DNA of 64,000 nucleotides, taken from assembly GCA_051294905.1 (NCBI GenBank), contig CM119384.1, forward strand, positions 17,608,001 to 17,672,000, given 5' to 3'. The notes beneath the pieces were generated by a model that was given only the letters and a program-made list of their open reading frames with translations, made no database searches and was not told the origin of the DNA. Position numbers and translations under genes: made by a program. This stretch comes from Botryllus schlosseri (Eukaryota). Shown here piece after piece: positions 18,934-45,385 of the stretch (position 1 is its first letter; every line of letters starts with the position of its first letter).

Positions 18934-19004
18934 ATATACAAGTTCAGCTAGCTTGACTTAATATATCAGTGCAAGTATACAATACATCTACAACTCTATT
19001 CCAG

Positions 19005-19230: not shown

Positions 19231-19423
19231 TTGACCTAAACTTAACAACAAGAACGCCAGTATTTGGTGTTGCTGGAGAATTGGTCACGTTACCTTGCAT
19301 ATTCAACGCATCTAAAGTGGATGTTTTCACTCTTCGTATTGAATGGCTCAAGAAAGTTGCTGGAGAAACCGTGAATGTGTATAGACAAACTGGTCTGGAA
19401 TATGAACGCTTCGGACACTATCG
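19231..19423 (+). CDS. Ig V-set domain 4, N-terminal half
   Basis: DLNLTTRTPVFGVAGELVTLPCIFNASKVDVFTLRIEWLKKVAG...ERFGHYR (not in the ORF track, read manually). 62-nt intron upstream; donor CG|gtaaga. Confidence 0.88.
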
Positions 19424-19481
19424 GTAAGAACTATTACACAGCTGGCGGGTTTTGTATCGAGTTTATAATTTTATGCTGCAG

Positions 19482-19639
19482 GGGTAGAACACGACTACCA
19501 TTTACTCTTGGTGATGCGTCTTTGAATATTTGGCAACTGAAGTCCCAAGATGCTGGAATGTATGTTTGCAAAGTCTCTGGAGTCAATCGTACAGAAAAGA
19601 TTATCACTGAATTAATTGTGGAGTCATTGTCAGCCCCAG
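19482..19639 (+). CDS. Ig V-set domain 4, C-terminal half
   Basis: RGRTRLPFTLGDASLNIWQLKSQDAGMYVCKVSGVNRTEKIITELIV; 58-nt intron upstream; donor G|gtactt (phase 1). Confidence 0.9.
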
Positions 19640-20372: not shown

Positions 20373-23300
20373 ATATAGGGACTGCAACATATTCAAATCC
20401 TTTGAAAGATGACGAGAATAAGACTGCAGTTTTGCTAGTATCGGCACAGACTACCCCAACAAAGATGCCATTACTGTCTGCCGCATCTCATACCTCTCAA
20501 TTTCAAATGATACTTGGAACCGACCGAACATATTCTCCCGAATCTAAACCAATATCAACAATTAAAATTATCGAAAAACCCATCACAGATGAACAACTAA
20601 GCACCCCTGTGTGGCAATCCGACACAGCAGTGTTATCTGAAGCCATGACAGAAACAATGCTCAGATTGCCCCCAAAAGAAATTGGATCTACGCCTGTTAA
20701 CAACATTGAACATTATAGGACCACCAATATTCCGGACATTGGTGTTTCGGAAGTATTATTGCTGAATGTCACTGTAGGGATATTACCTTATTTTATTCCC
20801 TCGAATAAGTCTGAAACCTTTACCATGCCAGTCACAACTCTAGAACAACTAATTGAGACAACTTCTGGAGATGTCAGAGCTTTACCAGAAGTGACTTCCG
20901 CCCAACCCAGCTATGCAACATTGACATCTGATGAAACAACTACTTTGTCACAAATGTTGTCAACGACAGCGGCGCATTCATTTTCCTCGGCACTGAACGC
21001 AATCAGTTCTGCATCAACCCTTCAGAGCGAAATTCGAGGTAGACGTCATAATTCGACACATGTCATTGTTGATGATGATGGCACGTCAGGAAGGCTTTCA
21101 ACTTTTGCAAAGAGCACCGAGCTGTACAAGGATATCAGCAACACAACTACATTTGAACGAACTATCAGAACAGAAAACATGACAAGATCAACCCATCTAC
21201 CACATCATGCTAAGACTAAAGAAGGTGTAAAACCATCTTCAACTTCTCTGCATCATGTAACTGAATCTTCAGGTCAATTTCCCCATACCTCTCCCAAACT
21301 TTCGTTGCAAAGTTCAATTATAGATAAATCCCGCGAATTGCATAGTTCAAGTGTTCAAAAAACAACTTCTAGCGTTTTGAGAATGAATTCAAGCTCTTCT
21401 CTTGTCAATATGAGCACCAGTAAAGAATTAATAAAGTCGTCGACAAAACTGTATGAAGCATCCAGAATGCCGGATTTTAATCATTCGCAATCGACAAAAG
21501 TGTATGAAGCATCAAGAATGCAGGATTCCAATCAATCACAATTTCCTTTCACCCGTAATACGTTTTCCAAAGCGCGCACATTCTCTCAACACTCGGCTAC
21601 TATGGATATAATTGATGCTTCATCTGACTCTTACGATGATAAAGATTCTCACGTTGTTACTATCCTTGATGATGAGTTATCAAGAACGTCAAATAAAGAA
21701 CCAATTTCCATGCAAGTTTCTCTACCGACACGAAAAGCTGAATTACTAGACATATCGCCATCATATACTCCAAGTAGGTTCACTGCATCACAGCAGCAGT
21801 ATTTGACCTCAAACCCACAATTCTTCAACATTTCAAGTAACGTGGGGATTTATGATGATGGATTTACAGAAGTCACCAAGCAATCTGTGAACGGGACTAC
21901 ATTAATGGGAGAAGCTAAAGATATGACCAAAACCGCAAATAATATGGATGCTACAGAAAATGCAACAACTACTATGGTTTCCACAGTTTCTTCGCCATAC
22001 ACTGTGTTAGGAGTTAATGGGTCACAATCGACGCTGTCGAATTTTATCAGTAAATTTGATGATTCAATATCTGGAAGTGGAAGCATTCATTCCGAAGCGA
22101 TTGTATCTACCAGTAAAAATATTGTTTCTCAGTCTAACGCAGCATCAGATACCTATTCAATGTCATCCACGCCAACTAGCATTTCCAGTCAATATTTTAT
22201 GAAAGTTACACCTCTGCCGAAAAAGATTGTGGGTGAATACCAGACTTCAGTGCCTTTGTCATATAAACCATCACTATATGCGAAACTATCATCAACTACG
22301 CGCAAAGATATAAATCTCATGAGAACCAATCTCATTCTAAATGCAACCCTATCTGATGATGGAGAGAGGATTTATAGCGGATCAGAACCAACAGTGACTA
22401 CTCTTAGAGAAGCAGATACTCCTTCAGATCATACCATTTCTATTAGTCTTAGCCCATATACGTCAACTGGTCAGGCTGAAGCATCTGCATCTGATACTTC
22501 TGAATTATCTACTGAAGGAGTTAGATCAGCGCAAAAGACAACGGTTGCGTTGGTGAATACGACTGTAATCAATGGAGGGGTTATTCAAACCTTATCAACA
22601 ACATCTGGATCTACACCGGATGTAGTATTAAGTATTGACGGAAGTATTGATCATTCAATTCCAATGCCTCCGACACTAACTTCCAGGCCTGTAATCTCAT
22701 TTCCTGTTCGCTCAACACCTTGGTCGTCTGAAATTCATTCAGTATCTGAAATAAATCGCTCATCTTCATATGGTACCTCCCCCAATATCCAGTACACACA
22801 TCCTCCAATATTCTCCATTGCTTCTAGTCCACATTATTCCAGTCAAACTTCAGACATCCCGAAGGTAACGGAGTCTGATACGTTTGTATATTCCGGTGCT
22901 ACTGAAACTGCGTTTGACGAGCTATCAAATGTTTCCCGTGTTGTTGAAAATTTGTCATCCTATATTTGGTTGACTACAGGACCAGAAACGTCATTCATTG
23001 ATATCTCAGACCACGAATTTATATATACCGCTACGGATGAAGATTCCAATGCTTATTCACAAACACCAAAATCTCAGATTGTAAGAAAAGACCATGATGA
23101 AGTATATGAAGATTGGGATAAATATTCGACACGGTCCACTGACAAGGAATCATCTATAAATCCAACAACTAATGAAGACTTTTCAGGTAGTGGCAATACA
23201 GAAGCTATTGCGACAGTTATTCAAAACATGGCCTCAACTCAGACCAGCACATCTTTTGGGTTATTTACACCTTCCAGAAATGATCTTACCTCTGAACGAA

Positions 23301-26300
23301 CTAGTTTTTCTGCAACTGATGGACACATATCCCAAGGAAGCCCAGTATTTTTGACTGATATATCAATTGAAGGTGCATTTTCTACAACAGAAACATTACA
23401 AAACATGTCCTCATATGACGAAACTTCTCCATTTCCTGCATCGACTTTCGCGGAATCTGGGACATCATCAATACCTCAGCAATCAACTTCATATGGTACA
23501 ATGAAATCGATTGAATCTGTGAAAAGCGTCACATACGCAAGTACAGATAGTACCACATTATCAGAAACCAAAAGTCTATCAAAGGTTTCTCCAATATACG
23601 GAATCACTGACAATATTCAGCAGGAAACAATTGTTGTACCATTCGAAAATGTGACATTTGATAATGCATCAGGTAGTGGATTTACCGAGAACACAACTAC
23701 AAAGAAGCAGAAAGACTCGCATGATCAAACTATATTTGATGAGACTTCGGAATCATCAACACCACGAGATTTAACCCAAACTAACACCAGGGAACAATTG
23801 TCTGAATCTTCTGCAAAATTATCAGAAACAATCGTTGTTGGACCGGAATATAATAAACATAACGTTACTGAAGACCTTTTATCCACAACAGAACATGTTT
23901 TATTAGAAAATATGAAATTTTTGGATGAATTATCGGGCAGTGGATCAACGGCTTCTGAATATTTTGCTCTGTCTTCCACCAGTCCAGTATCCTTTAAGCC
24001 CATTTCTGCAACAGATACTCGTCTGACTGATACTGCCGTTATGAACAAAACATTACCCAACAATATTACATTCGTTCCATTTGATAGTGAGCTATCAAGT
24101 CTTTCAACCGATATGGAAATATCTGGAAACGAGGAGATCACAAATCTGTTACCTAAAGATACAACATCGGACCTGGAAACTTTGAATGCCTACGCACCCA
24201 CTACAGGATTAAAGTCATTGGGAAGAGGCATTGCAGAATCAACAATAAAAGATATATCTTTCAATGAAATGACCACAACAAATGTAATATCAGATATGAC
24301 AACCTCTTTTACACCAGTCCTGTCTTTTAGTCAAACCAGTGTCAAGACTTCACAAATTCCAATAAAGAGCTATAAAATGACGGCAAAACCAAACGAAGCA
24401 TTCGCCAAACCAGAATCCAGTACAACTTATCCAGTTATCACAGAAACCATTCAAGGAAATCAACCAACCTCCGCATCCAAAGATTCAATAAAAATTACTG
24501 AAACAATTGATAAAGGCACTACCATGTTATTGGAAATCAAGAGTGAAGGACAACTTTCCACAATACATAACATTACTGCGGAAATGTCACCTGGAACAAC
24601 GTCAGTCTTACTACAAAATGTGTCGTTTGATGATGAATTATCAGGCAGTGGATTGTCACTCTTCACGGTTATAAATGAACAAAGTGCATCATTCAGTCCA
24701 GTATCGAATATGGCCCAGCAGAATTCAACATGGCCAATGCCCCAAGGAATTTCCATAAAGCCGACCAATGAATTATTATCAACCATTCCGATTGCCATGG
24801 AAATATCTGAAAATAGTGATACAGAAAGTGTAACGCTGGCAACTTCAGAGTTTATAAGTATGACCGAATCAACATCGAGTACAGAATTGAATTTGCGTGA
24901 TAGAAGCACTTCACAACCAACGGCAGATGTCATATCGTTTGACGACATAACCGCCATAGGTGTAACATCTGATATACCAAAGTCATATACATCAGACATA
25001 TTTTCCGGTCAAAGCGATATCAAGACTTCACAGATTTCTTTGAACAATTATCCGATGACAGTTCACCCACCTGAAGCATCCAAAGAAACTGAATTCAGTG
25101 GAACTCTACCAGACAGCACGCCAATCTTTGAAGAGTATCACACATTGTCAACATCGCACGAATCGACTGAAATCAAAATTAAAGAAGACTCGACAAAAAT
25201 GATGGAGCCACATGATCAAGACATTGATATCATGTTTGACACCACGAGTGAAGGATCAGATTCTACAATATATAACATTACTGACGACATATCATCTGGA
25301 ACAACTGGAATCGCATTGCAAAGTACAATATTTCAGTACGAGTTATCAGGCAGTGGACTGTACGAAATGAGATCTACGAATAAACCAAGACCGTCGCTCG
25401 CTGGATCAAGGAATCTCGTCCAGGAAAATGTAACACGACCTTTGTCGCATGATTTAAACTTAAAATCGACATATTCGCAAACCCTCTCTGCTGTGAACTC
25501 TGGCACGATTTTGGCAGGAGATAATCACTTGACTGCTACTGATGCTCTACTGAAAACATCAGAATATGATATGACATCTACTCGATATGATAGTGCACTA
25601 TCGAGTATTTCAACTGATACAGAAATATCTAGAAACGCAATTACAGAAGTTCCAACATTGTCAACTGAAGATGGAACTTCAGAGTTGGAAATTAGTGGTG
25701 AATTTGCTTCAACCACAGATGTAACTTTAATCAAAAGCACTGAAAAACCAACAATGCAAGACATAACTGTTGACTTCATAACCACTACTAGTGTAATATC
25801 TGACATAGCAATTTCATTTACTCGAGACATATCTACAACTCAAAACGAATTTGAGACTTCACAAATTTCTTTGAAGAACCATTCTATGCCGATAGCATTT
25901 GATTATCCGGAATTTAGCCAAACTATCTCAGTTGGCACATCGATCTTACCTGTATCACTGGCATCATCGACCTCGTGGGATTCAAATCAAACTGAAATCA
26001 AAGAAGCATTGTATGACTCGACAAACATTATTGAACCACTTTTTGAAGAGACTACCACTGTACTTGATACCATGAGTATAGGATCAGTTTCTACGATATA
26101 TAACATTACTGACGACATAGCATCTGGAACAACTGATATGGCATTGCAAAATATACCGTTGCATGATGAATTATCGGGTAGGGGATTATTTGACTTCAGT
26201 TCTACAAATAAACAAAGCACGTCATTCGATCAAACAATTAATGTCGCCAAAGAGAATGCAACGCGTCCATTGTCGCAAGAATTTGCACTATCAAGTATTT

Positions 26301-29300
26301 CATCTGATATAGAAATATCTGGAAATTCAATTACAGAAGACCCAACATTGTCAGTTAAAGATACATTTTCAGAGTTGGAAACTAGTGGTGAATTCACTTC
26401 AATTACGGAATTAAATTTAATTGAAAGTACAGAAAAGTCAACAATGCAAGACATATCTTTTGGCATCATAACCACAAATAGTGTAATATCTGACATTCCA
26501 ATTTCATCTACACGAGACATATCTACAACTCAAACCAAATTTGAGACTTTGGAAATTTCTTTGAAGAACCGTTCAACGCCGATAGAACAATATGAAGCAG
26601 TTGGCACATCGATCTTTCCTATATCACAGGCACTATCAACTTCATTGGATTCAAATCAAACTGAAATCAAAGAGCGAATGTATGACTCGACAAACATTAT
26701 TGAACCACTTTTCGAAGAGACTACCACTATACTAGATTACTCGAGTGAAGGATTAGTTTCTGTAAAATATAACATCACTGACGACATATCATCTGGAACA
26801 ACTGCCATTACCTTACAAAACATCTCATTCGATGACGAATTATCGGGCAGTGGATTGTTTGAATTCAGTTCTACAAATAAACAAAGCACGTCATTTGATC
26901 AAAAAATAAAGTTCATCCGGGAGAATGCAAGAATGCCATTGTCACAAGAATTTCGCTTGACATCGACGGATTCTCAATCACTCTCTACAATGAAAACCGT
27001 TTTCGATAAATCTGAGACACCATCAACCTCTGAATATTCAGTTCAGGCTTCCATCAATCCAGTATTGTATACATCGATTTTTGAAACAGATGCTCACTTG
27101 ACTAATACTGCTGTTATGCTCAAAGCATTAGAATATGATATGTCATCCACTCTATATGATTATGCACAATCACGTATTTCAACTGATATAGAAATATCTG
27201 GAAACGCAAGTGTCGAAGTCACAAAGTTGCCAGTTGAAGATACAACTTCAACTTCAGAGGGTGAACGTAGTGGTGAATTTACTTCGAATACTGTAGCAAA
27301 TTTAAATCCAAGCACTGAAGAACCAACAATGCCAGACATATCTTCTGGTAATACTACCAGTGAAAGTCGAATATCTGACAAAACAACTTCATTTACAAGT
27401 CAAATCGAATTAGAGACTTCACACATTTCTTTGAAGAACCATTCAACCCCAGTAGAAACATCTGAAGCATATCCGAAATTCAGCCAAACTGTTTCAGGTG
27501 GCTCGTCGTTCTTTACTGCATCACAGGCATCATCAACTTTATGGGATTCAGATCAAACTGAATTGAAAGAAGAATTACCTGAATCAACAAACGTCGTTGA
27601 ACTACTTTCTGAAGACACTACCATTGTAACCACCGCCATAAGTGAGGGATCAGGTTTCACGATATATAACATCACTGACGACATATCATCTCGCACAACT
27701 GACATTGCATTACGGAATATTTCATACGATGACGAATTATCGGGCAGTGGATTGTTTGAATTCACTTCTAAAAATAAACAAAGCACGTCATTCGATCAAA
27801 CAATGAAAGTCATCCAGGAGAATGCAACAATGCCATTGTCACAAGAATCTAGCGTGAAATCGACAGATTCTCAAACACTAACTACAATGAAAACAGTTTT
27901 CGATGGATTTGAGTCACCATCGATCTCCGAATATTCAATGCAGGCTTCCATCGATCCCGTTTATTTTACATCATTTCTCGAAACAGATGCTCACTTCACT
28001 AATACTGCTGTTACACTCATATATGATGATAACGCACCATCAAGTATTTCTACCGAGATAGAAATATCTGGAAACGCAAGTATCGAAGTCATAAAGGGGC
28101 CAGTTGAAGATACAACTTCAACTTCAGATAGTGAAAGTAGTGGTGAATTTACTTCGAATACTGTGACAAATTTAATTCCAAGCACTGAAGAACCAACAAT
28201 GCCAGACATATCTTCTGGTAATACATCCAGTGAAAGTCGAATATCTGATAAAACAACTTCATCTACAAGTCTATTCGAATTAGAGACTTCACACATTTCT
28301 TTGAAGAACCATTCAACGCCAATAGAAACATCTGGAGCATATGCGAAATTCAGCCGAACTGTTCCAGTTGGCTCGCCGTTCTTTCCTGCATCACAGGCAT
28401 CATCAACTTTATGGGATTCAGATCAAACTGAAATGAAAGAAGAATTACCTGAATCAACAAACGTCACTGAACCACTTTCCGAAGACGTTACCACTGTATC
28501 AGATGCCAGAAGTGAAGGATCAGGTTTTACGATACATAACATCACTGAGGACATATCATCTGGAACAACTGCCATTGCTTTACAAAATATATTATTCGAT
28601 GATGAATTATCGGGCAGTGGGTTGCTTGAATTCAGTTATACAAACAAACAAATCGCGCTATTCGATAAAACAATGAAAGTCATCCAGGAGAATGCAACAA
28701 TGCCGTTTTCACAAGAATTTATCATGAAATCGACAGATTCTCAAACACTCTCTACAATGAAAACCGCTTTCGATAAATTTGAGACACCATCCACCTCTGA
28801 ATATCCAGTTCAGATTTCCACCAATGCTGTATTTTCTTCAACATTTTTTGAAACAGACCCTCACTTGACTGAAACTGCTGTTACACTCAAAACATCGGAA
28901 TATGATGTGTCATCCACTCGATATGATTATACACCATCAAGTATTTCAACCGATTCAGAAATATCTGGAAACGCAAGTATCGAAGTCACAAAGGTGCCTG
29001 TTGAAGGTACAACTTCAACTTCAGAGGGTGAAAGTAGTGGTGAATTTACTTCGAATACTGTGGCAAATTTAATTCCAAGCACTGAAGAACCAACAATGCC
29101 AGACATATCTCCTGGTAATACAACCAGGAAAAGTCGAATATCTGACAAAACAATTTCATCTACAAGTCAAATCGAATTAGAGACTTCACACATTTCTTTG
29201 AAGAACCATTCAACGCCAGTAGAAACATCTGAAGCATATGCGAAATTCAGCCGAACTGTTTCAGTTGGCTCGTCGTCTTTTCCTGCATCACATGCATCAT

Positions 29301-32300
29301 CAACTTCATGGGATTCAGATCAAACTGAAATGAAAGAAGAATTCCCTGAATCCACAAACGTCACTGAACCACTTTCCGAAGACACTACCAATGTATCAGA
29401 TGCCACAAGTGAAGGATCAGGTTTTGCGATACATAACATCACTGAGGACATATCATCTAGAACAACTGCCATTGCTTTACAAAATATATCATTCGATGAT
29501 GAATTATCGGGCAGTGGGTTGCTTGAATTCAGTTCTACAAACAAACAAGTCGCGCCATTCGATAAAACAATGAAAGTCATCCAGGAGAATGCAACAATGC
29601 CATTTTCACAAGAATTTATCATGAAATCGGCAGATTCTCAAACACTCTCTACAATAAAAACCGTTTTCGATAAATTAGAGACACCATCCACCTCTGAATA
29701 TTTAGTTCAGGCTTCCACCAATGTAGTATTTTCTTCAACATTTTTTGAAACATACCCCCACTTGACTGAAACTGCTGTTACACTCAAAACATCGGAATAT
29801 GATGTGTCATCCACTCCATATGATTATACACCATCAAGTATTTCAACCGATTCAGAAATATCTGGAAACGCAAGTATCGAAGCCACAAAGGTGCCAGTTG
29901 AAGGTACAACTTCCACTTCAGATAGTGAAAGTAGTGGTGAATTTACTTCGAATACTGTGGCAAATTTAATTCCAAGCACTGAAGAACCAACAATGCCAGG
30001 CATATCCCCTGGTAATACAACCAGGAAAAGTCGAATATCTGACAAAACAATTTCATATACAAGTCCAATCGAATTAGAGACTTCACACATTTCTTTGAAG
30101 AACCATTCAACGCCAGTAGAAACATCTGAAGCATATGTGAAATTCAGCCGAACTGTTTCAGTTGGCTCGGCGTCTTTTCCTGCATCACAGGCATCATCAA
30201 CTTTATGGGATTCAGATCAAACTGAAATGAAAGAAGAATTCCCTGAATCAACAAACGTCACTGAACCACTTTCCGAAGACACTACAACGGTATCAGATGC
30301 CACAAGTGAAGGACCAGGTTTTACGATACATAACATCACTGAGGACATATCATCTGGAACAACTGCCATTGCTTCACAAAATATATCATTCGATGATGAA
30401 TTATCGGGCAGTGGGTTGCTTGAATTCAGTTCTACAAACAAACAAGTCGCGCCATTCGATAAAACAATGAAAGTCATCCAGGAGAATGCAACAATGCCAT
30501 TGTCACAAGAATTTAGCGTGAAATCGACAGATTCTCAAACACTCTCTACAATGAAAACAATTTTCGATAGATTTGAGTCACCATCGATCTCCGAATATTC
30601 AATGCAGGCTTCCATCAATCCAATTTATTTTACATCATTTCTCGAAACAGATGCTCACTTCACTAATACTGCCGTTACACTCATATATGATAATAACGCA
30701 CCATCAAGTATTTCAACCGAGATAGAAATATCGGGAAACGCAAGTATCGAAGTCATAAAGGGGCCAGTTGAAGATACAACTTCAACTTCAGATAGTGAAA
30801 GTAGTGGTGAATTTACTTCGAATACTGTGGCAAATTTAATTCCAAGCACTGAAGAACCAGCAATGCCAGACATATCTTATGGTAATACAACCAGTGAAAG
30901 TCGAATATCTGACAAAACAATTTCATCTACAAGTCAAATCGAATTAGACACTTCACACATTTCTTTGAAGAACAATTCAATGTCAGTAGAAACATCTGAA
31001 GCATATGCGAAATTCAGCCCAACTGTTCCAGTTGGCTCGTCGTCTTTTTCTGCATCACAGGCATCATCAACTTTATGGGATTCAGATCAAACTGAAATGA
31101 AAGAAGAATTCCCTGAATCAACAAACGTCACTGAACCACTTTCCGAAGACATTACCACTGTATCAGATGCCAGAAGTGAAGGATCAGGTTTTACGATACA
31201 TAACATCACTGAGGACATATCATCTGGAACAACTGCCATTGCTTTACAAAATATATTATTCGATGATGAATTATCGGGCAGTGGGTTGCTTGAATTCAGT
31301 TATACAAACAAACAAATCGCGCCATTCGATAAAACAATGAAAGTCATCCAGGAGAATGCAACAATGCCATTTTCACAAGAATTTATCATGAAATCGACAG
31401 AATCTCAAACACTCTCTACAATGAAAACCGCTTTCGATAAATTTGAGACACCATCCACCTCTGAATATCCAGTTCAGATTTCCACCAATGCTGTATTTTC
31501 TTCAACATTTTTTGAAACAGACCCTCACTTGACTGAAACTGCTGTTACACTCAAAACATCGGAATATGATGTGTCATCCACTCGATATGATTATACACCA
31601 TCAAGTATTTCAACCGATTCAGAAATATCTGGAAACGCAAGTATCGAAGTCACAAAGGTGCCTGTTGAAGGTACAACTTCAACTTCAGAGGGTGAAAGTA
31701 GTGGTGAATTTACTTCGAATACTGTGGCAAATTTAATTCCAAGCACTGAAGAACCAACAATGCCAGACATATCTCCTGGTAATACAACCAGGAAAAGTCG
31801 AATATCTGACAAAACAATTTCATCTACAAGTCAAATCGAATTAGAGACTTCACACATTTCTTTGAAGAACCATTCAACGCCAGTAGAAACATCTGAAGCA
31901 TATGCGAAATTCAGCCGAACTGTTTCAGTTGGCTCGTCGCCTTTTCCTGCATCACAGGCATCATCAACTTTATGGGATTCAGATCAAACTGAAATGAAAG
32001 AAGAATTCCCTGAATCAACAAACGTCACTGAACCACTTTTCGAAGACACTACCACTGTATCAGATGCCACAAGTGAAGGATCAGGTTTTACGATACATAA
32101 CATCACTGAGGACATATCATCTGGAACAACTGCCATTGCTTTACAAAATATATCATTCGATGATGAATTATCGGGCAGTGGGTTGCTTGAATTCAGTTCT
32201 ACAAACAAACAAGTCGCGCCATTCGATAAAACAATGAAAGTCATCCAGGAGAATGCAACAATGCCATTGTCACAAGAATTTAGCGTGAAATCGACAGATT

Positions 32301-35300
32301 CTCAAACACTCTCTACAATGAAAACAGTTTTCGATAGATTTGAGTCACCATCGATCTCCGAATATTCAATGCAGGCTTCCATCAATCCAATTTATTTTAC
32401 ATCATTTCTCGAAACAGATGCTCACTTCACTAATACTGCTGTTATACTCATATATGATGATAACGCACCATCAAGTATTTCAACCGAGATAGAAATATCT
32501 GGAAACGCAAGTATCGAAGTCACAAAGGTGCCAGTGGAAGGTACAACTTCCACTTCAGATAGTGAAAGTAGTGGTGAATTTACTTCGAATACTGTGGCAA
32601 ATTTAATTCCAAGCACTGAAGAACCAACAATGCCAGGCATATCTCCTGGTAATACAACCTGGAAAAGTCTAATATCTGACAAAACAATTTCATCTACAAG
32701 TCAAATCGAATTAGAGACTTCACACATTTCTTTGAAGAACCATTCAACGCCAGTAGAAACATCTGAAGCATATGCGAAATTCAGCCGAACTGTTTCAGTT
32801 GGCTCGTCGCCTTTTCCTGCATCACAGGCATCATCAACTTTATGGGATTCAGATCAAACTGAAATGAAAGAAGAATTCCCTGAATCAACAAACGTCACTG
32901 AACCACTTTTCGAAGACACTACCACTGTATCAGATGCCACAAGTGAAGGATCAGGTTTTACGATACATAACATCACTGAGGACATATCATCTGGAACAAC
33001 TGCCATTGCTTTACAAAATATATCATTCGATGATGAATTATCGGGCAGTGGGTTGCTTGAATTCAGTTCTACAAACAAACAAGTCGCGCCATTCTATAAA
33101 ACAATGAAAGTCATCCAGGAGAATGCAACAAAGCCATTTTCACAAGAATTTATCATGAAATCGACAGATTCTCAAACACTCTCTACAATGAAAACCGTTT
33201 TCGATAAATTTGAGACACCATCCACCTCTGAATATTCAGGTCAGGCTTCCACCAATGTAGTATTTTCTTCAACATTTTTTGAAACATACCCTCACTTGAC
33301 TGAAACTGCTGTTACACTCAAAACATCGGAATATGATGTGTCATCCACTCCCTATGATTATACACCATCAAGTATTTCAACCGATTCAGAAATATCTGGA
33401 AACGCAAGTATCGAAGTCACAAAGGTGCCAGTTGAAGGTACAACTTCCACTTCAGATAGTGAAAGTAGTGGTGAAGTTACTTCGAATACTGTGGCAAATT
33501 TAATTCCAAGCACTCAAGAACCAACAATGTCAGGCATATCTCCTGGTAATACAACCAGGAAACGTCGAATATCTGACAAAACAATTTCATCTACAAGTCA
33601 AATCGAATTAGAGACTTCACACATTTCTTTGAAGAACCATTCAATGCCAGTAGAAACATCTGAAGCATATCCGAAATTCAGCCAAACTATTCCAGGTAGC
33701 TCGTCGTTCTTTACTGCTTCACAAGCATCATCAACTTTATGGGATTCTGATCAAACTGAAATCAAAGAAGAATTACCTGAATCAACAAGCGTCGTTGAAC
33801 TACTTTCTGATGACACTACCATTGTAACCACTGCCATAAGTGAAGGATCAGGTTTCACGATATATAACATCACTGACGACATATCATCTCCCACAACAGA
33901 CATTGCATTGCGAAATATCTCATTCGATGATGAATTATCGGGCATTGGATTGTTTGAATTCACTTCTACAAATAAACAAAGCACGTCATTTGATCAAACA
34001 ATGAAAGTCATCCAGGAGAATGCAACAATGCCATTGTCACAAGAATTTAGCGTGAAATCGACAGATTCTCAAACACTCTCTACAATGAAAACCGCTTTCG
34101 ATAGATTTGAGTCACCATCAACCTCTGAATATTCAATGCAGGCCTCCATTAATCCAGTATTTTTTACATCATTTCTCGAAACAGATGCTCACTTCACTGA
34201 TACTGCTGTTACACTCAGATATGATGATGATGTACCATCAAGTATTTCAACCGAGATAGAAATATCTGGAAACGCAAGTATCGAAGTCACAAAGGTCCCA
34301 GTTGAAGATACAACTTCAACTTCAGATAGTGAAAGTAGTGGTGAATTTACTTCGAATACTGTGGCAAATTTAATTCCAAGCACTGAAGAACCAACAATGC
34401 CAGACATATCTTCTGGTAATACAACCAGTAAAAGTCGAATATCTGACAAAACAATTTCATCTACAAGTCAAATGGAATTAGAGACTGCACACATTTCTTT
34501 GAAGAGCCATTCAACCCCAGTAGAAACATCTGAAGCATATCCGGAATTCAGCCGAACTGTTTCAGGTGGCTCGTCGTTCTTTACTGCATCACAGGCATCA
34601 TCAACTTTATGGGATTCAGATCAAACTGAATTGAAAGAAGAATTACCTGAATCAACAAACGTCGTTGAACTACTTTCTGAAGACACTACCATTGTAACCA
34701 CCGCCATAAGTGAGGGATCAGGTTTCACGATATATAACATCACTGACGACATATCATCTCGCACAACTGACATTGCATTTCGGAATATTTCATACGATGA
34801 CGAATTATCGGGCAGTGGATTGTTTGAATTCAGTTCTACAAATAAACAAAGCACGTCATTCGATCAAACAATGAAAGTCATCCAGGAGAATGCAACAATG
34901 CCATTGTCACAAGAATTTAGCGTGAAATCGACAGATTCTCAAACACTCTCTACGATGAAAACCGTTTTCGATGGATTTCAGTCACCATCAACCTCTGAAT
35001 ATTCAATGCAGGTTTCTATCAATCCAGTATTTTTTACATCATTTCTCGAAACAGATGCTCACTTCACTGATACTGCTGTTACACTCAGATATGATGATAA
35101 TGCACCATCAAGTATTTCAACCGAGATAGAAATATCTGGAAACGCAAGTATCGAAGTCACAAAGGTGCCAGTTGAAGATACAACTTCAACTTCAGATAGT
35201 GAAAGTAGTGGTGAATTTACTTCGAATACTGTGGCAAATTTAATTCAAAGCACTGAACAACCAACAATGCCAGACATATCTTCTAGTAATACAACCAGTA

Positions 35301-38300
35301 AAAGTCGAATATCTGACAAAACAATTTCATCCACAAGTCAAATCGAATTAGAGACTTCACACATTTCTTTGAAGAACCATTCAACGCCAGTAGAAACATC
35401 TGAAGCATATGCGAAATTCAGCCGAACTGATCCAGTTGGCTCGTCGTCCTTTCCTGCATCACAGGCATCATCAACAATATGGGATTCAGATCAAACTGAA
35501 ATGAAAGAAGAATTACCTGAATCAACAAACGTCATTGAACCACTTTCCGAAGACACTGCCACTCTACCCGCTGTCATAAGTGAAGGATCAGGTTTTACGA
35601 TATATAACATCACTGACGACTTATCATCTGGAACAGCTGTCATTGCATTACAAAACGTATCATTCGATGATGAATTATCGGGCAGTGGATTGTTGGAATT
35701 CAGTTCTACAATTAAACAAAGCACGACATTCGATCAAACAATGAAAGTCATCCGGGAGAATGCAACAATGCCATTGTCACAAGAATTTAGCGTGATTTCG
35801 ACAGATTCTCAAACACTCCCTACAATGAAAACCGTTTTTGATAAATTTGAGAAACCATCCGCTTCTGAATATTCAGTTCAGGCTTCCACCAATCTAGCAT
35901 TGTTTACGTCGGTTTTTGCAACAGATGATCATTTGACTGATATTGATGCTATACTCAAAACATCGGAATATGATATGACATCTATTCGATATGATAGTGC
36001 ACTATCAAGTATTTCAAATGATGCAGAAATATCTGCAAACGCGACTACAGAAGTTTCAACATTGTCAGTTGAAGATACAACTTCCGAGTTGGAAATTAGT
36101 GGTGAATTTACTTCAACTACAGAGGTAAATTTTATCGAAAGCACTGAACAAGCAACAACGCGAGACATATCTTTTGGCAGTATTACGACTACTAGTGTCA
36201 TATCTGAAGTAGAAATTTCATCTACACCATATATATCTACAACTCAAACCGAATTTGAGACTTCACAAATTAATTTGAACCATTCAACACCCATTGAAGC
36301 ATCTCCATATCCGGAATTCCGCCAAACTCTTCCAGTTGGCTCGTCGTTCTTTCCTGCATCACAGGCATCATCAACTTCATGGGATTCAGATCAAACTGAA
36401 ATGAAAGAAGAATTACCTGAATCAACAAGGTCCGTTGAACCACTTTTCGAAGACATTACCACTGTACCACATGCCATAAGTGAGGGATCAGGTTTAACGA
36501 TATATAACATCACTGACGACATATCATCTGGAACAACTGCGATTGCATTACAAAATATATCATACGATGATGAATTAGCGGGCAGTGGATTATTTGAATT
36601 CGGTTCTACAAATATGCAAAGCTCGTCATTTGATCAAACAATGGCAGTCATCCAGGAGAATGCAACACGGCCATCGACAGATTCCCAAACCTATAGTGTG
36701 AAAACTGTCATTGATGAAGTTCATCCATCACCGACCTTTGAATATTCTGCTAACGCTTCCACCAATCCAGTATTCCCTACGTGGGATTTTGCAACAGATG
36801 CTCACTTGACTGATACTATTGCTATCCTGAAGAGATCAGAATATGATATGACATTCACTCCATATGATAGTGCGCTATCAAATATTTCAACCGATATAGA
36901 AATATCAGGAAACGCAATCATCAAAGTTAAAAATCTTTCAGCTGAAAATACTACTTCAGAGTTGGTAACTGGTGGTAAATTCAGTTCAAATTCAGAAGCA
37001 AACTTAATTCCAAGCACCGAGCAACTAACAATGCAGGACATATCTTTTGGCACTATAACCACTAAAAGTGTATTATCGGACATAGCAATTCCATCTACAC
37101 GCATTATATCCTCAAGTCAGACCGAATTGGAGACTTCACAATTTTTCTCGAAGAACCATTCAACACTGGTAGAATCATCTGAAGGATCTGCCTATCCATA
37201 TTTTGATCAAACTCTTCCAGCTGGCACATCAATCCTTCAAGTATCACTGGCATCATCATCTTCACAGGATTCAAATCAGACTGAAATCAGAGAACAATTA
37301 TCTGAATTAACAAACATTATTGAACATCTTTTCAAAGACACTACGACCCTACTAGATAACACAACTGAAGGATCAATTTCTACAATACGCAACATGATAG
37401 AAGTCATGTTATCTGAAACAACAGCAGTGGCATTACAAAATATATCATATGATGATGGAATATCAGGTAGTGGTTTTTCTGACTTCACCATAATGACTGG
37501 ACAAGGTACATCATTCGGCCAAACGCCGAGTGTATCCTGGCAGAATACAACATTGTCGATACCAGAAGAAGTTGACATGAAATCGGTACAATCTCACACA
37601 CCTGCTATGAAAGAAGTATTTGAAACATCATCAATGTCTGAATATTCTGCACCTGCATCCACCAGTCGACGCTTTTATCAATCAATTTCTGGAGTAGATC
37701 TTGGCGTGGCGGATAACACTACGCTTGATGGTGTGCTTGAAGGTGTATCGGCCGATATGGAAATATCTGGACACACAAGTACTGAAGTTATAAAGTTGTC
37801 AGTTGAAGAAGCAACTTTAGAGTTGAAAGCCACAAGCGCATCTACTTCAAATACAGTACTCAATGTATTTCAAAGAAGCACTGAACAGCCAAAAATGCAA
37901 GACGTATTTAGTGGTGACATAATCACAACAAGTTTCACGTCTAACGTAACGACTTCTTTTACACCAAACAAATCGCCTAGTCAAAGCGATGCAAAGTCTT
38001 CACAGATTTCGTCAAATATCTATTCAACGCCAGCAGAGCCATCTGAAAAATTCACAAAACCAGAATTTATTAAAACCTCACTGGTCACAACAACCTACTT
38101 TCAAGATTCTCAAGCCTCATCAACATCACAAGATTCAACTCAATCTAAAATCACAGAAGAAATATTTGAATTGATAAACACTATTGATCCACTTGTTGAA
38201 GACACCACCATCGTATTGGATATCACAAGTGAAGGAAGATTTTCTACGATAAATAACATGACCGAAGGCATGTTTTCTGGAACAAGAACAGTCTCATTTC

Positions 38301-41300
38301 AAAATATATCACATGATGATGAAGTATCAGGTAGTGGCTTATCTGACTTCGCGACTATAAACGAATCAAGTACATCATTCAGTGAAATTTGGAATGTATC
38401 CCTGCAAAATACAACACTACCAATATCAGATGAAATTTACGTAAAATCTACAGAATCTCGAACGTTTGAAAACTCATCTACTTCGCCGTCTACCAGTACA
38501 CAGTCATTTGCGTCAATTTCTGCAACAAAAGCTCATTTTACGGATACCCCTGTTTTATCGAAATCATCGGAAATCAATATGACATACACTACAGTCGCTA
38601 GTGCGGTACCGAGAATATCAATAGATATGGAAATATCTGGAGATGGCTTACCAGATGTTACGGTACTTTCAGTTGAGAAAACAGTATCAGAGTTGGCAAC
38701 TAATAGTAGATCTACGTTAAATAAAGAGTTGAGTTTACTTGAAAGTACTACTGAACAGCCAACAATACATAACATAACCGCAGTAGGTGTACTATCTGAC
38801 ATAGCAACTTCATATACACCAGAAAAATCTTCCTTTGAAACTGATGTCACGACTTCTGAAATTTCATTAAAGAACAATTCCATGCTATTGGAACCATCAG
38901 ATGCATCCATGAAACCGGAATTTAGTCATATATCTCCGGTTAGCACATCAATTTTTCAAGGTTCTTGGTTGTCATCATCATCACATGATGTGACTCAAAC
39001 TAATATCCAAGTAGAATTATCAGAATCAACGAAAATTATGGAGCCAACTGTACTAAAAACTTCTGTGGAAATAGAAACCTCTAATGAAAGACCACTTTCT
39101 ACGATGCAGAACGTGAGCGAATATATGTCATCTGGGACAACAGATGTTGCATTACAAAATATATCATTCGATGATGAATTATCGGGCAGAGGATTGTCAG
39201 ACTTCGTCGTAATATCGTTGCAGAATTCAACACGGCCAATGACAGATGGGTTTAGCATGGAATCAACAAAAATATACTCACTTTCTACTATGAATACCAA
39301 ATATGAAGACTTTCTGATATCATCGCTTGCTGAATATTCTACTAAGGTGTCGTCCAGTTCTCTGCTGCTTGAGTCGACTTCTGCTACAGATGACACTTCA
39401 ACCGATAATGCTGTTACACTCAATGTATCAGACAAGGAAATCACTGGTGTCACTTTTCAAAGCACGTTTTCAACCGTATCAGTTGATGAAGAATTATCTG
39501 GTAGTGTTTCTTCTGATAATACTGATAATACTGAGGAAATGATTCAAGACACTACTCCTCAGTTAGAGACAATAATTATATCTACTTCAAACATCAAAGA
39601 CAGCAAATTTGAAAGAAGTTCAATACAAACAACAGTGTCAGAACTAGACAACAAAAGTGCAAGAATCGGACTATCTGAATCCACGCTTCCTTTTATAGCC
39701 AACATATCGCATAATCCGCCCAGCAACAATTCAGGATCTCAGTCATCGTTGATATCACAAGATATAACTCAATCTACAATCACCGGTGAATTAATCGAAA
39801 ATGGTACTGACGAATTAGTGAAAAGCTCTACCACTGATACAGTATTGGTTTATCAAATGCAAAATACCACAAAAGACTTCCTTCTTGAACCAGCAATAGC
39901 GACACCGCAAGATCTCTCTTTCGATGATGAATTATCGGGAAGTGGATTTATCAAAATGACTGCTATAGATGAGCTCAATGTAACTTTCACTCAAACGGTT
40001 TCAAGTGAATTCTCAACATTCCTACCATCCATGACACAGTACACGGAAAGGCAATCAAATCAAACAATCTTTTTTGGAGACGCAATAGTAGAAATATCTC
40101 ACACATCACCATCTTCTATATATCCCACTACTCCGTTATTCAGCTCACGGCCAATACAATCAATTCCTGCAGCATCTAAAGCAATTTTCCTTACCTCACA
40201 AATTTCAATAAAGAATATTTCAGCGCCATTAGCATCATTTGAAACATTTTCTCAGAGTAATATGTATCCACTTGAAACAACGATTTATGAAGAATCTGAA
40301 GCGTCATCAATGCCTCAAGATGTAACGGAAACTTCAATCAAAGAAGAATCCTCTGAATCTACCGAAGATATTGAGACTTTGTCTGAAGAAACGACTTTAA
40401 AAATTGAAACTACAAATACTGCAGATGCTTCCAAAATGATGAACATGACTGAAGATTTTATACCGGCAACTGAAACAACGACTGGTGAATCTAATGTATC
40501 ATTTGAACAAGTCTTCGACTCCACAGCGAAAGTTTCATTGGATAATGTTTCAATGCAATTTGCACCAACTGGAATTTCTCCACAGCCTCACTCTCAAGAC
40601 ATATCAGAAAGTACCACTGAAAAATTTAGGGTGTCTCAAATGACTCCTGCATTAGTACCTTTACCAAGTACAGAATTGTTTGCAACCACAAAAGGTGTTG
40701 AGCCAGGTATGAAACACTCTACTAATGCTAGAGATAGTACTTATGAAGATATAATACCAGAAACCATATTATTTGACGAAATATCATCAGGTTTAGAATC
40801 TGTCGGATGGAGCACTGTACATTTTCTGAATATATCTACTAATGAAACCTCTTTATCCGCACTTCAAACTTCCTTGAAATACTTGCCAACTACATCAGAA
40901 TCTTTCGAGATTTCAAAGATGGATTCGAGTCAAGCGTCAGCATTCACCGAAACAATCCGCAGAACGTCTGAAGCACCATCAACCGCATATATCCTTCCCG
41001 GCAGAACTGTTGGGGACTCATTGGAAGCTACTATGTCATCCAATCGGTCAAAAACTTCAACATCTTTTTTTACCCCATTTCCATTATCGCGGAACACTGA
41101 GATATCCACGGATTTTATTGAGGTTACACATTCTGGTTACGATTCTCCTCACATGTTGAGCGAGAATCCATATCGAAATATTTCGATTGATCAAGCAATT
41201 TCTGGAAGTGGACTTAGTCCTACTAATGCGATTTTGACAGGCACTCCTACGGAGGAAAGTATGAATGCGTCAACTATTAACGAAATTGAACAAAGTACAT

Positions 41301-44300
41301 TGCAACCAACAACTTCTTTACAAAGTGTATATTTCAGTGATGGAACTACGGGAACAGAAGTTATTGAACTGGAAACTGCGTTTGAAGTGAATGTATCTGT
41401 CGATCAAACATTCATGCCAAAATCATTAACCCCATCACAATATTTTTCGAAAAATATAAGTTTTAAAAATTCTGCTTCTATTCCAGTGTATTGGTATACT
41501 AAGGAAGCAATCGAAGGATCTTCAATGCTTCAATATTCAACTCTGTCGTCGGATGATGCAGAATTATTTGCACCTTTATTAACTACTAAAGAGGATAATC
41601 AGAACTCAACAGGGGAAACAGAAACCGAAAAAGTAGAACATTTTCTTTCAACTTACAGTGATATTCAAGGCAACGTAACACAAACAACCGTATCATGGAT
41701 ACAACAAACTTCATTTCAAGACGGATTGATACCTATGTCGTCATCTGAGTCAATAGAAAGTACATATCCCACTGAAATCTCCATTTCAACATCACAAAAT
41801 ATTCCAAAGAGCTCTCCAATTCCATCACAATTGTATCATCCTTATGCCTCATCAAATACCACGTCCAAAACTCGAAGTACTTATTCTTCTGCAGCATTTA
41901 TCACAAGCACCTATGACATGCAGAAATCTCGTGATGTAGCGGTAAATCAGCAACTTTCAACCATGGCACAAACTGAAATAATACCAACAGAGCATAGCAT
42001 ATCAAGTGATGATTTTCAATCTACACTGTCTGTAGAGTCATTACCAGATACTACAACAGATGAAAAAATTTATGGGAGTGGCTTTGCTGAAACGGGATCT
42101 CAAAATGCGTTAGATGCTATTACTGCTTACAGTTTATTTGATGTTAAAGCAAATTCGACTCAAGCGAGTTATATTACGCTGAGTTTTCCAGCTGACGGGG
42201 AAATTTCAGGCAGTGGACTTTTCGAGGCACATGAGAATGCAACCCCAAACATTGTTTCGCCAACAGTAAAACCTTATCAGCAAATGTATCTAGGTGACAG
42301 GAGCACTTTCAGCAGATCGTCTATTTCACCAGCCATATTTACTGCAAAAATACCTTACAGCCATACTATCAGCAAGATGTCACCAACTTCACTGCAGTCG
42401 GAAGGAGGTTCCAGTCAAACAATCCCAACATTCACAACGTCATTTAAGGAATCTGAAATTTCGAGAAACCCTCTAAATTCCACTCAGTACCAATCTACTT
42501 CAGTAATAGTTGATGCTACTTCTGGGAGTCATGCTGTGAATTCTACATTTTTATCTGATATAACTTCCCCCAATATTGAACTATCGAGTCTGGTCCGTAT
42601 TTCGGACATACCTTCAAGTACATCAGCAGTTGTATACCAAACAATTTCTCCGGACGCGATGGAAAATACAACTACAAGGAATGTTTCTTATGCCAATACT
42701 GAAGAGTCAACGCTGAGTACTTCAACAGGGAAGAGCTATACCGGCAGTGACTTTGCTGAAAACACAACAATCATTGCCGAAGACATTTCCTTGGGAGTGC
42801 AGGATTCAACATACAACGATGTTGACGTGACTAAATTGGAAACAACCAAATTAATATCTCAAAACATTTCTTTTACTGATGTCCCTAAATATATTATATA
42901 TTCTGAGGAGCCAGCTGTTAACAAACCAAAAGATTATTTTGATAGTGAGATTGCTTCAACAGCAGATATAACACTTCCATATAGCACGATGACGCGGAAA
43001 GCTATATATTTCCCTGCGAACTTGCATTTGAATCAGACATCCTCATTAAAAACTCTTGGTTCCACAGAAATGTCAACATATATCATCGGATCTCAAGCAA
43101 TTATTAATGCTTCAAAGAGTCAGATTTTTGACAATACTGTGCAGCATTATGACATGACTACTTCAGATATTGAAGTAATTTCAGGCAGTAAGATTGATGT
43201 AGCAACTGTTCCACCAGTGGGAAACACTACCTTCCAAGAAGAAGAAACGACTAAAATTAAATCAATGTTTGCTCGACCTTTTAACACAATTAAGGTCAAC
43301 ATAAATGCTTCGCCAGGGAAAAGTATACCCAATGGTCGTAACAGTACTGAAATGGAAATCAAGACATCCGGAAGTAAAAATGAATACATTAGTCGAATTT
43401 ATACTTCGTCCCTTGGAATTCAATCTGAAATGATGGTACCAAAATCTACAACATTATTTTCGAAACTAACAGGTTCTCCTGGCCTTCGCGATTCTTCAAT
43501 TTCATCAGAATCTCAGTTTCCAACACAGCTATCAATCAGTTCATCCTCGCTTGATTTTTCTGAGACTGGTGACTTTAATGTCTCTTCGCGCATTTTCAGC
43601 AGTACTGGTGACGATCTCATATCTCCAACACTTGCTACCGGCTTGTCTGAAGAAACTCCACCATCAATGAAAGACACCACATCGAGATTCATAAAAAATG
43701 ATGCATCAGCGGCTTCTACGACATACACTGGATTGAAATTCGATAGATCACAGGAAACACCAATGCCTTTGCTAAGTGTATTTTCTAGCTCCAGCAGCAC
43801 ATACGCTGAAGGTGATATTATCGAACCAGCAACCTCTCATAAAGTAGACATATCCATGATTCATACTCCTGTTCAAAAGTCACCGAATGCTTCATTAGCT
43901 TATTTATTATCCTCCGGGCCTTCTTCAATGCCAACGACTTACCAGAATGAAACATTGATGCCTGGTACGGCCGATGACTTAACACCATCCTCCCGCAATT
44001 CTTCGTCAACAGAATCTTTGATTCAAAATCTGCCATATTTTACTAGTGAAAAACCCTCTACATCGATTTATCAATCAATGGATTCACCTCAGTTCCATTT
44101 TTCACCGGAGTCTACCACTAATAACGCTAAGATGACACGGGGAAGCACCATCAATCTGCCAGTGACTCCTGACATTTATATCACTAAAGAGAATAACACA
44201 CGACAGTCAATGATGATTGCTCCGAAAGGTGGATCCCTTGGTAATGTAATTGACGGAATTGATATTTACCAAATAACAACTGTAGATACACCGCGTGCAT

Positions 44301-45371
44301 CTTCCGGTCAAATTACCGTTGAATTGCCCGATACCAGACAAAATTACTCGACATTGTCAGATTATCAAGAAATATCTTCTTATTTCAAGCATCCATCAAC
44401 CACCTCTAAAACACACAAAAATATTTCTGAAATTCCAAGTCAGAGTATATCTTCTATTTTTGAAGATAGCATATCAACGATGGCTAATATACGAGGAACT
44501 AGTTATGCAGCAACCGCTCTTGTTAGAAGTAAGGTTTCTACTAGAAAAATGATCTCCGGCGCATCAGAGGCTTCGACAAACGAAAATGTATTAAATGATG
44601 TATCTTCTGAAGCCGTGGAAATTATCAGTGAAACAGTTTTGCCATCTATATCTGCACTTGGAATTTCCAATCAGCAACAGATTTCAGCTGAAGCATCAAC
44701 GATCATTGAACTGAAGTCTTCGAGTGAAACAGTGCCTGTATCTACGTCAGGATTACGAAGTGATTTTCTTACTAGCACTTTTTCGCCTTACTATTCAACA
44801 GAACCATTTGATGACACAATGTCTTCAGATATTAGTCTGATGCGAAGTTTTTCACCTGTCACTAACAAAGTCATCAAGAATGCTTTAGAATTCAATTATT
44901 CCAGGCCTGTAATAACAGAGCTACCTGATATTTCAGTCGATGAAGACACTACGATTGGTACGATTCCTGGCACGGAGTTCATGTCATCAAATCCAGCAGA
45001 AAAATCTACTGAGCTTGAAACTACTGCTTCAAAACAAACGTTTGCAGGTAGTGCATTGTCCGCTACGGCTGTCAGGGAAGAAATTACAAAAAGTGTCGAT
45101 ATTGAAAGTATGTCCAGCAAAGAAAAGATTGAAATTACAAAGCTGACAAGTACTAGAGTATCTGAAACAGATATATTTGAATCTGCTGCACACATGTCAA
45201 ACAGAATGGATGACAGTTCAATTTCTGTAACAAGCTTACAGTCAGCGTTACCCGTGAAGAGTTTGAAATTGTCGCACTCTCGTTATTCCACCGGAACAAC
45301 CAACATACCAGCACAAGGCGAAGAATCAGAGTCATTAACAACTACATTGCTTCTGTCAAGCACTGAATCAG
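20373..45371 (+). CDS. Giant 24,999-nt exon (8,333 codons): Ser/Thr/Glu/Asp-rich GAG-attachment / mucin-like region
   Basis: ORF 20402..45433 is open throughout. Acceptor ctcttattacag|AT ATA (phase 1) is in frame; candidate donor TCA G|gtatcc at 45372 (phase 1). More than 20 acidic-SGSG-type motifs and no Cys seen on read-through. The 3' boundary is inferred. Confidence 0.85.
23660..39950 (+). repeat. Coding tandem repeat array (about 290-300 aa units; near-identical core about 26830-36570)
   Basis: DDELSGSG-type markers at 26831, 27728, 28598, 29495, 30392, 31262, 32159, 33029, 33926, 34796, 35666 and 36566 (spacing 897/870 nt, last 900). Degenerate flanking units have markers at 23921, 24629, 25334, 26162, 37451, 38315, 39170 and 39923. 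Confidence 0.92.
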
Positions 45372-45385
45372 GTATCCATTTGACC

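Follow-up and report, generated by a model that had tools for sequence, protein, structure and literature searches.

A 25-kb tandem-repeat coding exon and a transposon-derived intron in the gene of a probable tunicate matrix glycoprotein

Introduction

Can a single internal exon of 24,999 nucleotides (nt) be real coding sequence in a non-vertebrate chordate and, if so, what kind of protein does it serve? The question is raised by a 64,000-nt stretch of Botryllus schlosseri DNA (GenBank assembly GCA_051294905.1, contig CM119384.1, positions 17,608,001 to 17,672,000 of the forward strand). We refer to this stretch as the window; coordinates are counted from its first base. Here we report that 20373-45371 is a genuine giant coding exon, at least partly transcribed, and that the intron following it is young and derived from a transposon. 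Quite probably, the exon belongs to the gene of a secreted tunicate matrix glycoprotein, in which it would encode an extended, glycosylated core of proteoglycan or mucin-like type.

Results

The open frame around the exon spans 20348-45430 (8,361 codons) and is closed by a terminator at 45431-33. Within this frame, the giant exon (20373..45371, + strand) is delimited by an AG at 20371-72, with a pyrimidine-rich tract ahead of it, and by a GT at 45372-73. The donor upstream has the sequence …CCCCAG/GT and follows position 19639; exon phases were read against this position and against the acceptors downstream. The first two bases of the exon close a codon begun upstream and its final base opens another, so both ends are in phase 1 and the exon contains 8,332 whole codons plus two split codons. 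From base composition, about 531 stops were predicted in the coding frame, and none was found (P ~1e-238). The two other sense frames contain 372 and 751 stops and the antisense frames 230-726. Outside the giant frame, and apart from a second Ser/Thr-rich frame of 506 codons at 46948-48465, open stretches in the window reach at most 161 codons. Not one of the 8,361 codons specifies Cys, and codon-position bias was detected in the giant frame. The product contains 17.7% Ser, 14.0% Thr, 8.0% Glu and 4.7% Pro, with Ser plus Thr (S+T) at about 32% throughout the exon, and its 1,132 Asp and Glu residues against 472 Lys and Arg give a net charge of -660.

We searched the 495-Mb genome with the repeat unit of the exon (described below) and with both of its unique ends. 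All three matched this locus alone, so no dispersed element lies inside the exon. The underlying sequence is continuous: 124 kb are free of gaps and Ns, and the window has no N runs. A previous sequence-only reading of this DNA had claimed a single 24,999-nt coding exon of symmetric phase 1-1, devoid of stops, Cys and transposons. The claim of a single exon is borne out by the AG and GT ends, the open frame and a donor that is used in RNA; the other claims agree with the counts of zero and with the single-locus matches.

Evidence on transcription came from reads and contigs compared with 42720-48719 and drawn from the runs X1 (RNA-derived Logan contigs), X8, X15 and X19. X1 contigs cover 43229-45286 contiguously, without internal joints, and also 46982-47589; their depth is zero over the single-copy part of the intron in between. 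In one X1 contig, of depth 16, position 45371 is followed directly by 46982, and the skipped interval has GT..AG ends. This coverage and this joint show transcription for the 3' part of the exon and use of the donor at 45371. The acceptor turned out to differ from the earlier prediction, which had placed it at 46958: the RNA joint uses 46982, 24 nt further downstream. Both AGs are in frame, and 46958 was not seen in the RNA contigs. Among the observations named beforehand as damaging to a single exon were absence of transcription and internal splice junctions. The presence of X1 RNA contigs on the 3' 2 kb answers the first for that end of the exon. As to the second, X1 showed no internal junction over 43229-45286, the stretch tested being the last 2 kb of the exon. 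X8 behaved as genomic DNA, covering all of 42720-48719 and reaching depths in the thousands over the intron repeat. Contigs from other individuals differed from the reference in the exon at ~1-1.5% of sites (e.g. 9 in 659 nt; 42720-47600). Such polymorphism is high and typical of marine invertebrates.

We considered whether the full 25 kb might be included rarely or never, the exon being mostly skipped to leave a compact isoform in which the fourth Ig domain adjoins a C-type lectin domain (Ig4-CTLD), or being broken up by cryptic internal introns. Exons of such size are hard for exon definition (PMC3467050), and two bulk RNA-seq runs lacked coverage. Skipping would also be neutral for the frame: exons 20373-45371 and 46982-48424 and the CTLD start at 48488 are all in phase 1, so any skipping combination keeps the frame. 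This explanation nevertheless appears improbable to us, since the RNA contigs are contiguous over the last 2.1 kb and spliced from the very end of the exon, and since keeping stops, frameshifts and Cys out of 8,333 codons, also after the repeats diverged, needs selection on full-length translation. Exons for extracellular modules are as a rule of phase 1-1, so that this phase is weak evidence for alternative splicing. Thus, of the skipped Ig4-CTLD isoform proposed in the sequence-only reading, frame compatibility stands, with the phases weakly informative; none of the reads supported it.

Comparison of the exon with itself by BLAST revealed three parts. The unique N-terminal part (20373..23593, + strand; ~1,073 amino acids (aa), S+T 32%) has no internal or genomic copies. 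It is followed by a tandem array (23594..40741, + strand; exon residues ~1074-6789) of 19-20 units of 290-299 aa (~870-897 nt), which makes up ~68% of the exon. The unique C-terminal part (40742..45371, + strand; ~1,543 aa) is the part reached by the joint-free RNA contigs. Tandem Repeats Finder (TRF) was run on 20-49 kb with a period limit of 500 nt, so the 890-nt array escaped it; it reported a small 51-nt repeat in two copies (86% match) at 21440-21542, inside the unique head. The ten central units of the array (26744-35566) share 87-99% nt identity, and toward both array ends the edge units have decayed to 22-40% aa identity. Two unit subtypes of 299 and 290 aa are interleaved and differ by a 27-nt indel. 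The reference unit of 299 aa (31175..32071, + strand) contains the motifs SEGSGF, N-I-T, DDELSGSGLLEF, ENAT, EISGN and ESSGEF, on which the invariant alignment columns fall.

To judge from these alignments, the homogenised centre and decayed edges are the classic signature of unequal exchange or conversion, and the pattern argues against a simple assembly duplication. It is improbable, in our estimate, that the length is in part an assembly artefact, with the array too long or too short for the real allele. In favour of such an error, some units are 96-99% identical over ~900 nt, and mucin-type arrays are usually length-polymorphic (PMC13345508). We take the array to be real because its copies differ by 1-13% at the nt level. 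These differences and the two interleaved subtypes can be resolved by long accurate reads; moreover, no gap interrupts the assembly, the frame is intact at every unit boundary, and without the ten central units the exon would still measure ~16 kb.

Searches with the exon product brought up no relatives. Pfam gave only sub-threshold or spurious matches on the giant exon, and those to SMG1_N and UfSP were rejected for that reason. No homologue was found in protein searches with exon region 1-5000 or with one repeat unit, and the last 1,200 aa of the exon had 0 matches among 1.84 billion representative proteins. AlphaFold2 modelling of the unit, using a 16-unit alignment, returned a mean predicted local distance difference test (pLDDT) score of 33.9, with 299 of 299 residues below 50 and no secondary structure except two short strands, as predicted for a disordered chain; the alignment of 16 paralogous units is shallow and low pLDDT does not prove disorder.

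The repeat units allowed us to estimate what selection maintains. The ratio of nonsynonymous to synonymous changes (dN/dS, Nei-Gojobori) amounted to 0.88 when central units were compared with one another and to 0.66 for diverged pairs, and most of the amino-acid sequence therefore drifts. The frame, by contrast, is kept: none of 453 distinct variant states in 12 units is a nonsense change, where 19-23 were expected (P 1e-8 to 1e-10), and 38 of 38 gap runs between units are multiples of 3. Eighteen alignment columns are invariant and 35 near-invariant, and these cluster on SEG, N-I-T, DDELSGSGL, ENAT and EISGN. Ser-Gly (SG) dipeptides number 128 against 53 expected (2.4-fold), 120 of the 128 having Asp or Glu within 4 residues; a single unit contains 6, where 1.9 are expected (p=0.004). 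Acidic residues beside Ser-Gly(-x-Gly) form the recognition pattern of the xylosyltransferases that initiate glycosaminoglycan (GAG) chains. The strong purifying selection postulated earlier must thus be narrowed down. It appears to maintain the frame, the avoidance of Cys and the glycosylation motifs, and to leave the remaining amino-acid sequence nearly neutral.

The exon product looks like a long, disordered, polyanionic region made for glycosylation. In character it seems closer to the GAG region of lecticans than to a classical mucin of the Pro/Thr/Ser (PTS) type, with O-glycans likely too. A strict mucin would carry dense GalNAc-type O-glycans only and no GAGs, and would form a lubricating or barrier gel, e.g. 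feeding mucus or a tunic surface. The constant S+T content of 32%, the lack of Cys and of a predicted fold, and the layout of a single huge repeat exon with homogenised centre and degenerate edges, as in the variable number tandem repeat (VNTR) exons of human mucins (PMC13345508), make this a possibility that deserves weight, although we hold it to be unlikely. A strict mucin accounts poorly for the low Pro content: only 11 of 824 windows of 100 aa combine S+T >=40% with Pro >=5%, a PTS threshold used in mucin prediction. Also at odds with it are the strongly acidic charge and the nature of the best-kept positions, which are acidic Ser-Gly(-x-Gly) sites typical of xylosyltransferase targets and not Thr/Pro runs, as well as the lack of SEA, VWD and CysD domains. 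The mucin and proteoglycan readings are compatible with each other and do not exclude one another.

The exons on either side of the giant exon encode extracellular domains, all on the + strand. Four V-set Ig domains precede it, each with an internal phase-2 intron, phase-1 outer introns and its Cys pair. Domain 1 (3932..4363; exons 3932-4130 and 4206-4363) was identified by Pfam V-set/I-set matches, AG/GT ends and a continuous spliced frame. Domain 2 (8583..15911) is encoded by exons 8583-8763 and 15604-15911, the second with a Ser/Thr linker of ~55 aa; domain 3 (16094..19168) by exons 16094-16268 and 19005-19168; and domain 4 (19231..19639) by exons 19231-19423 and 19482-19639, the donor after 19639 being in phase 1. 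Beyond the giant exon and a second Ser/Thr-rich exon lies CTLD 1 (48488..50590), a Pfam Lectin_C match with three exons in the open segments 48469-48705, 49638-49856 and 50450-50818. Three EGF domains follow (51400..55067; EGF_CA at 51400-51669, EGF at 53263-53508 and EGF at 54912-55067), then CTLD 2 (56504..58340; three exons in 56504-56743, 56747-56887 and 58181-58340) and Sushi/CCP domains 1-3 (58350..62920; open segments 58350-58568, 61601-61993 and 62576-62920). CCP 4 lies 1.6-1.9 kb past the window end (locus L003) and ends ...CPQRK-stop. The gene order is thus four V-type Ig domains, giant exon, second Ser/Thr exon, CTLD, three EGF, CTLD, four CCP and stop.

The spliced model from Ig1 to the second Ser/Thr exon comprises 9,325 aa without a stop and uses canonical sites throughout; the full protein would contain ~10,000 aa. 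No transmembrane segment was seen, and the stop directly follows the terminal CCP. The giant exon and every flanking exon were scanned with Pfam, which identified only V-set Ig, Lectin_C, EGF and Sushi domains. CTLD 1 matched LY75, PLA2R and NKG2D in the PDB. A Thr/Ala-rich open segment at 6488-6694, between Ig1 and Ig2, is possibly a linker exon of optional use; it is not needed to close the spliced model.

The giant exon is followed by an intron of 1,610 nt (45372..46981, + strand), defined by the GT..AG joint of X1 and by frame reconstruction. It consists of 14 nt of host DNA, a transposon with its 8-bp target site duplication (TSD) and 319 nt of former coding DNA, so that 327 nt, the second TSD copy included, follow the element. 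The transposon (45386..46654; 1,269 nt) is a non-autonomous hAT-like DNA element, recognized by its dispersed copies, terminal inverted repeats (TIRs) and TSD. A first look gave 2,135 candidate copies in the genome; copies are 75-92% identical and share start and end points. The TIRs, CAGTGGTTCTCAAAC and CAATGGTTCTCGAAC, are imperfect inverses of each other, agreeing at 13 of 15 positions, and start with CAGTGG; the TSD reads ATTTGACC / ATTTAACC. The element thus shows the short TIRs, the 8-bp TSD and the dispersed same-ended copies by which non-autonomous hAT elements are known. No transposase turned up, and none was sought; the longest open reading frame of the element is 97 aa.

Downstream of the intron lies the second Ser/Thr-rich exon (46982..48424, + strand; 1,443 nt, phase 1-1, no Cys). 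Its acceptor is known from the RNA joint; its donor, CAT/GTAAGT, is predicted and absent from the reads, and the junction 48424 to 48488 is likewise a prediction. X1 depth was zero over the last 700 nt of this exon and over the first CTLD exon, both of which X8 covers. This gap may reflect sequence divergence beyond the 95% cut-off, low coverage or a transcript with a different 3' end.

Removal in silico of the element together with one duplicate (1,277 nt) joined the two Ser/Thr frames as …TESGIHLT/SSMQPSNS…. Because this removal restores one frame seamlessly, we place the ancestral exon at ~26.8 kb. We also considered whether the X1 joint could be a DNA allele with an empty site. This was rejected, since the segment missing from the joint measures 1,610 nt, not 1,277 nt, and is bounded by GT..AG. 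The intron at 45372-46981 is therefore young and transposon-derived, and the second Ser/Thr exon was once continuous with the giant exon. A hAT-like transposon inserted into the ancestral exon and came to be spliced out in frame between two recruited host dinucleotides, a GT lying 14 nt before the element and an AG lying 327 nt after it, at the cost of 341 nt of coding DNA. The inserted transposon survived only since splicing could remove it.

The 319-nt coding relic stranded in the intron now contains one TAA (46945-47) and one Cys codon. This has a bearing on the proposal that the locus is decaying or non-functional, i.e. a pseudogene or a recently dead gene. A central dN/dS close to 1, the lack of detected homologues and of a detected signal peptide, and degenerate partial CCP duplicates downstream would all agree with a dead gene. 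The absence of stops, frameshifts and Cys from the giant exon, however, is incompatible with neutrality, whereas the relic has already gained both a stop and a Cys, and the exon is transcribed and correctly spliced (X1, 3' end). We therefore regard a dead gene as very improbable.

Within +/-40 kb we found no second giant exon or paralogue, only degenerate CCP duplicates. These lie 20-40 kb downstream, beyond the window end, and are a partial copy of CCP1 at 87251-87442 (locus L006; 57% aa identity, cysteines lost) and one of CCP4 at 103397-103708 (locus L008; 77% aa identity, ending ...CPQRK-stop). Between them, at 89096-90508 (locus L004), a 276-codon frame on the + strand and a similar 159-codon frame on the - strand carry a GIY-YIG-like motif, YVGRTSERLQERISQH; we take these frames to resemble the remnant of a Penelope-type retroelement. 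Elsewhere in the genome (G000:C9:15025585-15088831) there are two GT2 + GH6-like gene pairs of cellulose-synthase type on the same (minus) strand. A GT2+GH6 fusion is a cellulose synthase peculiar to tunicates among animals, and the presence of these pairs indicates that the genome is of tunicate origin.

Discussion

We favour the view that the giant exon encodes the core of a secreted matrix glycoprotein. The acidic Ser-Gly sites would serve as GAG attachment points, beside N-glycans and probably mucin-type O-glycans. The core would space the four N-terminal V-type Ig domains from the C-terminal cluster of CTLD, three EGF, CTLD and four CCP domains, and the whole molecule may be a hydrated, space-filling, cross-linkable bottle-brush like vertebrate versican and aggrecan. 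The array would grow and homogenise through unequal crossing-over and gene conversion, with selection acting on frame, length, composition, Cys avoidance and glycosylation motifs and leaving the remaining sequence free. Sulfated glycans are known from ascidian tissues, and the gene is a concrete candidate for one of their core proteins.

Several points weigh against this view. Read support covers the last 2 kb of the exon and its donor; the 19639 to 20373 junction is predicted, transcription of the first 23 kb with the array is presumed, and the copy number of the array (19-20) is the one given by the assembly. The X1 contigs extend to about 47,600, and the connection between the second Ser/Thr exon and the CTLD is a prediction. 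In the bulk RNA-seq runs X15 and X19, only transposon-derived reads and no expression were found over 42720-48719, from which we conclude that the gene is tissue-restricted or expressed at a low level. No convincing candidate for a first exon with a signal peptide was found within 20 kb upstream. Glycosylation was read from motifs only, and the predicted disorder carries the limits stated with the AlphaFold2 model. A central dN/dS near 0.9 also fits very weak constraint, and the protein searches yielded no orthologue that could show conservation. As for the earlier argument from purifying selection, it is qualified by the insertion described above: the ancestral exon was hit by a transposon, which it tolerated through intronization.

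The origin of the intron can be compared with known cases, since transposon-driven intron gain has been described (PMC9860276, PMC12130899, PMC11282704). As in transposon-derived introns and introners, a DNA transposon with TIRs and a TSD lies in coding sequence, is removed by the spliceosome and leaves the frame intact (PMC9860276, PMC12130899, PMC11282704). Here, unlike in introners, the splice sites are a pre-existing host GT and AG and come neither from the element nor from the TSD; moreover, we see a single event and no genome-wide burst. The locus provides a clean, datable example of intron gain, in which the stranded coding relic is already decaying.

In size, the exon falls into the class of the largest animal coding exons, as the sequence-only reading had asserted, without being a record. 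In humans, more than 21 kb are reported for MUC16 exon 3 and more than 17 kb for the largest exon of TTN (PMC3467050); VNTR alleles of MUC4 reach up to 27.8 kb, a size surpassed by the VNTR exon of MUC12 (PMC13345508). With 25.0 kb (~26.8 kb before the transposon), an exon of the top size class is thus present in a non-vertebrate chordate, and its sequence is without match in libraries of billions of predicted proteins. It would follow that exon definition by the spliceosome of a tunicate, as of mammals, can extend to an internal exon ~170 times as long as usual.

The exon shares with the mucin VNTR exons (MUC16 exon 3, MUC4, MUC12) a giant internal position of 20-30 kb or more consisting mostly of tandem repeats, a homogenised centre with degenerate edges, a Ser/Thr-rich, Cys-free and apparently disordered product, and relaxed sequence constraint with the frame kept (PMC3467050, PMC13345508). 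It differs from them in being Pro-poor and strongly acidic, with conserved SG motifs. The unit is far longer than in most mucins and, unlike that of MUC16, does not form a folded SEA repeat. Pfam scans found neither the accessory domains of gel-forming type (VWD/C8/TIL/CysD) nor SEA or NIDO-AMOP-VWD with a transmembrane segment. Of the features of a PTS domain, the large repeated exon and an S+T content of 32% are present, together with 4.7% Pro and few windows above the PTS threshold.

The closest likeness in architecture is to the lecticans, to which the versican analogy of the earlier reading had pointed. The two have in common an N-terminal Ig-type domain; a Ser/Thr/Glu-rich acidic middle region without Cys, which contains acidic Ser-Gly sites and is the product of one or two exons of phase 1-1 and very large size (versican GAG-alpha/GAG-beta, aggrecan chondroitin sulfate region); and a C-terminal EGF-EGF-CTLD-CCP series, each CTLD being encoded by three exons, with the protein terminating shortly after a CCP. 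Aggrecan also has tandem SG-bearing repeats. To judge from sequence, the large exon, the 2.4-fold enrichment of SG, the conserved DDELSGSGL and EISGN and the predicted disorder resemble a lectican GAG region. The lectican G3 order EGF-EGF-CTLD-CCP is present, with three EGFs, an extra CTLD before them and three more CCPs after it. The G1 region, which in lecticans consists of one Ig and two Link modules, has no counterpart: there are four V-set Ig domains and no Link. Link modules (Xlink, PF00193) are absent from the gene, and genome-wide matches were confined to two loci on C2 and C7, with none on C14 near the gene. The exon is 5-8 times larger than the versican exons of ~3 and 5.3 kb, and its repeats are of 295 aa.

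In a weak test of specific relatedness (single exons searched against the PDB with phmmer; no phylogeny), the CTLD and Ig matches were all of a generic kind. LY75, MRC1/2, PLA2R and NKG2D ranked above the aggrecan CLD (E 5e-7 and 9e-8), and pIgR and CEACAM ranked first for the Ig exon. Lacking a Link module and a specific sequence affinity, the gene is best regarded as a lectican analogue and not as a member of the family. The versican analogy thus holds for architecture and composition (Ig head, acidic Cys-free core, EGF-CTLD-CCP tail) and fails for membership.

The lectican family is held to be new in vertebrates (PMC1950077; bioRxiv 10.1101/2020.09.24.311837; see also PMC11788884). A search in amphioxus found only expressed sequence tags resembling the C-terminal EGF-lectin part, and its authors proposed that chondroitin sulfate might be carried there by genes that are related in structure but not orthologous (PMC1950077). 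Domain shuffling is the process by which lecticans are taken to have arisen. A bolder, and in our judgement improbable, idea is that the gene descends from a pre-vertebrate proto-lectican, in which an Ig head, a giant GAG exon and an EGF-CTLD-CCP tail were already united in the common ancestor of tunicates and vertebrates. Vertebrate lecticans would then have arisen by the addition of Link modules, and tunicates would retain a Link-less lectican carrying sulfated glycans of the matrix or the tunic. Giant VNTR glycoprotein exons and lectican-like proteoglycan layouts are both known; this gene is a variant of both and has a transposon-induced intron besides. A lectican layout minus the hyaluronan-binding Link modules, found in a tunicate, is either a striking convergence or a surviving precursor.

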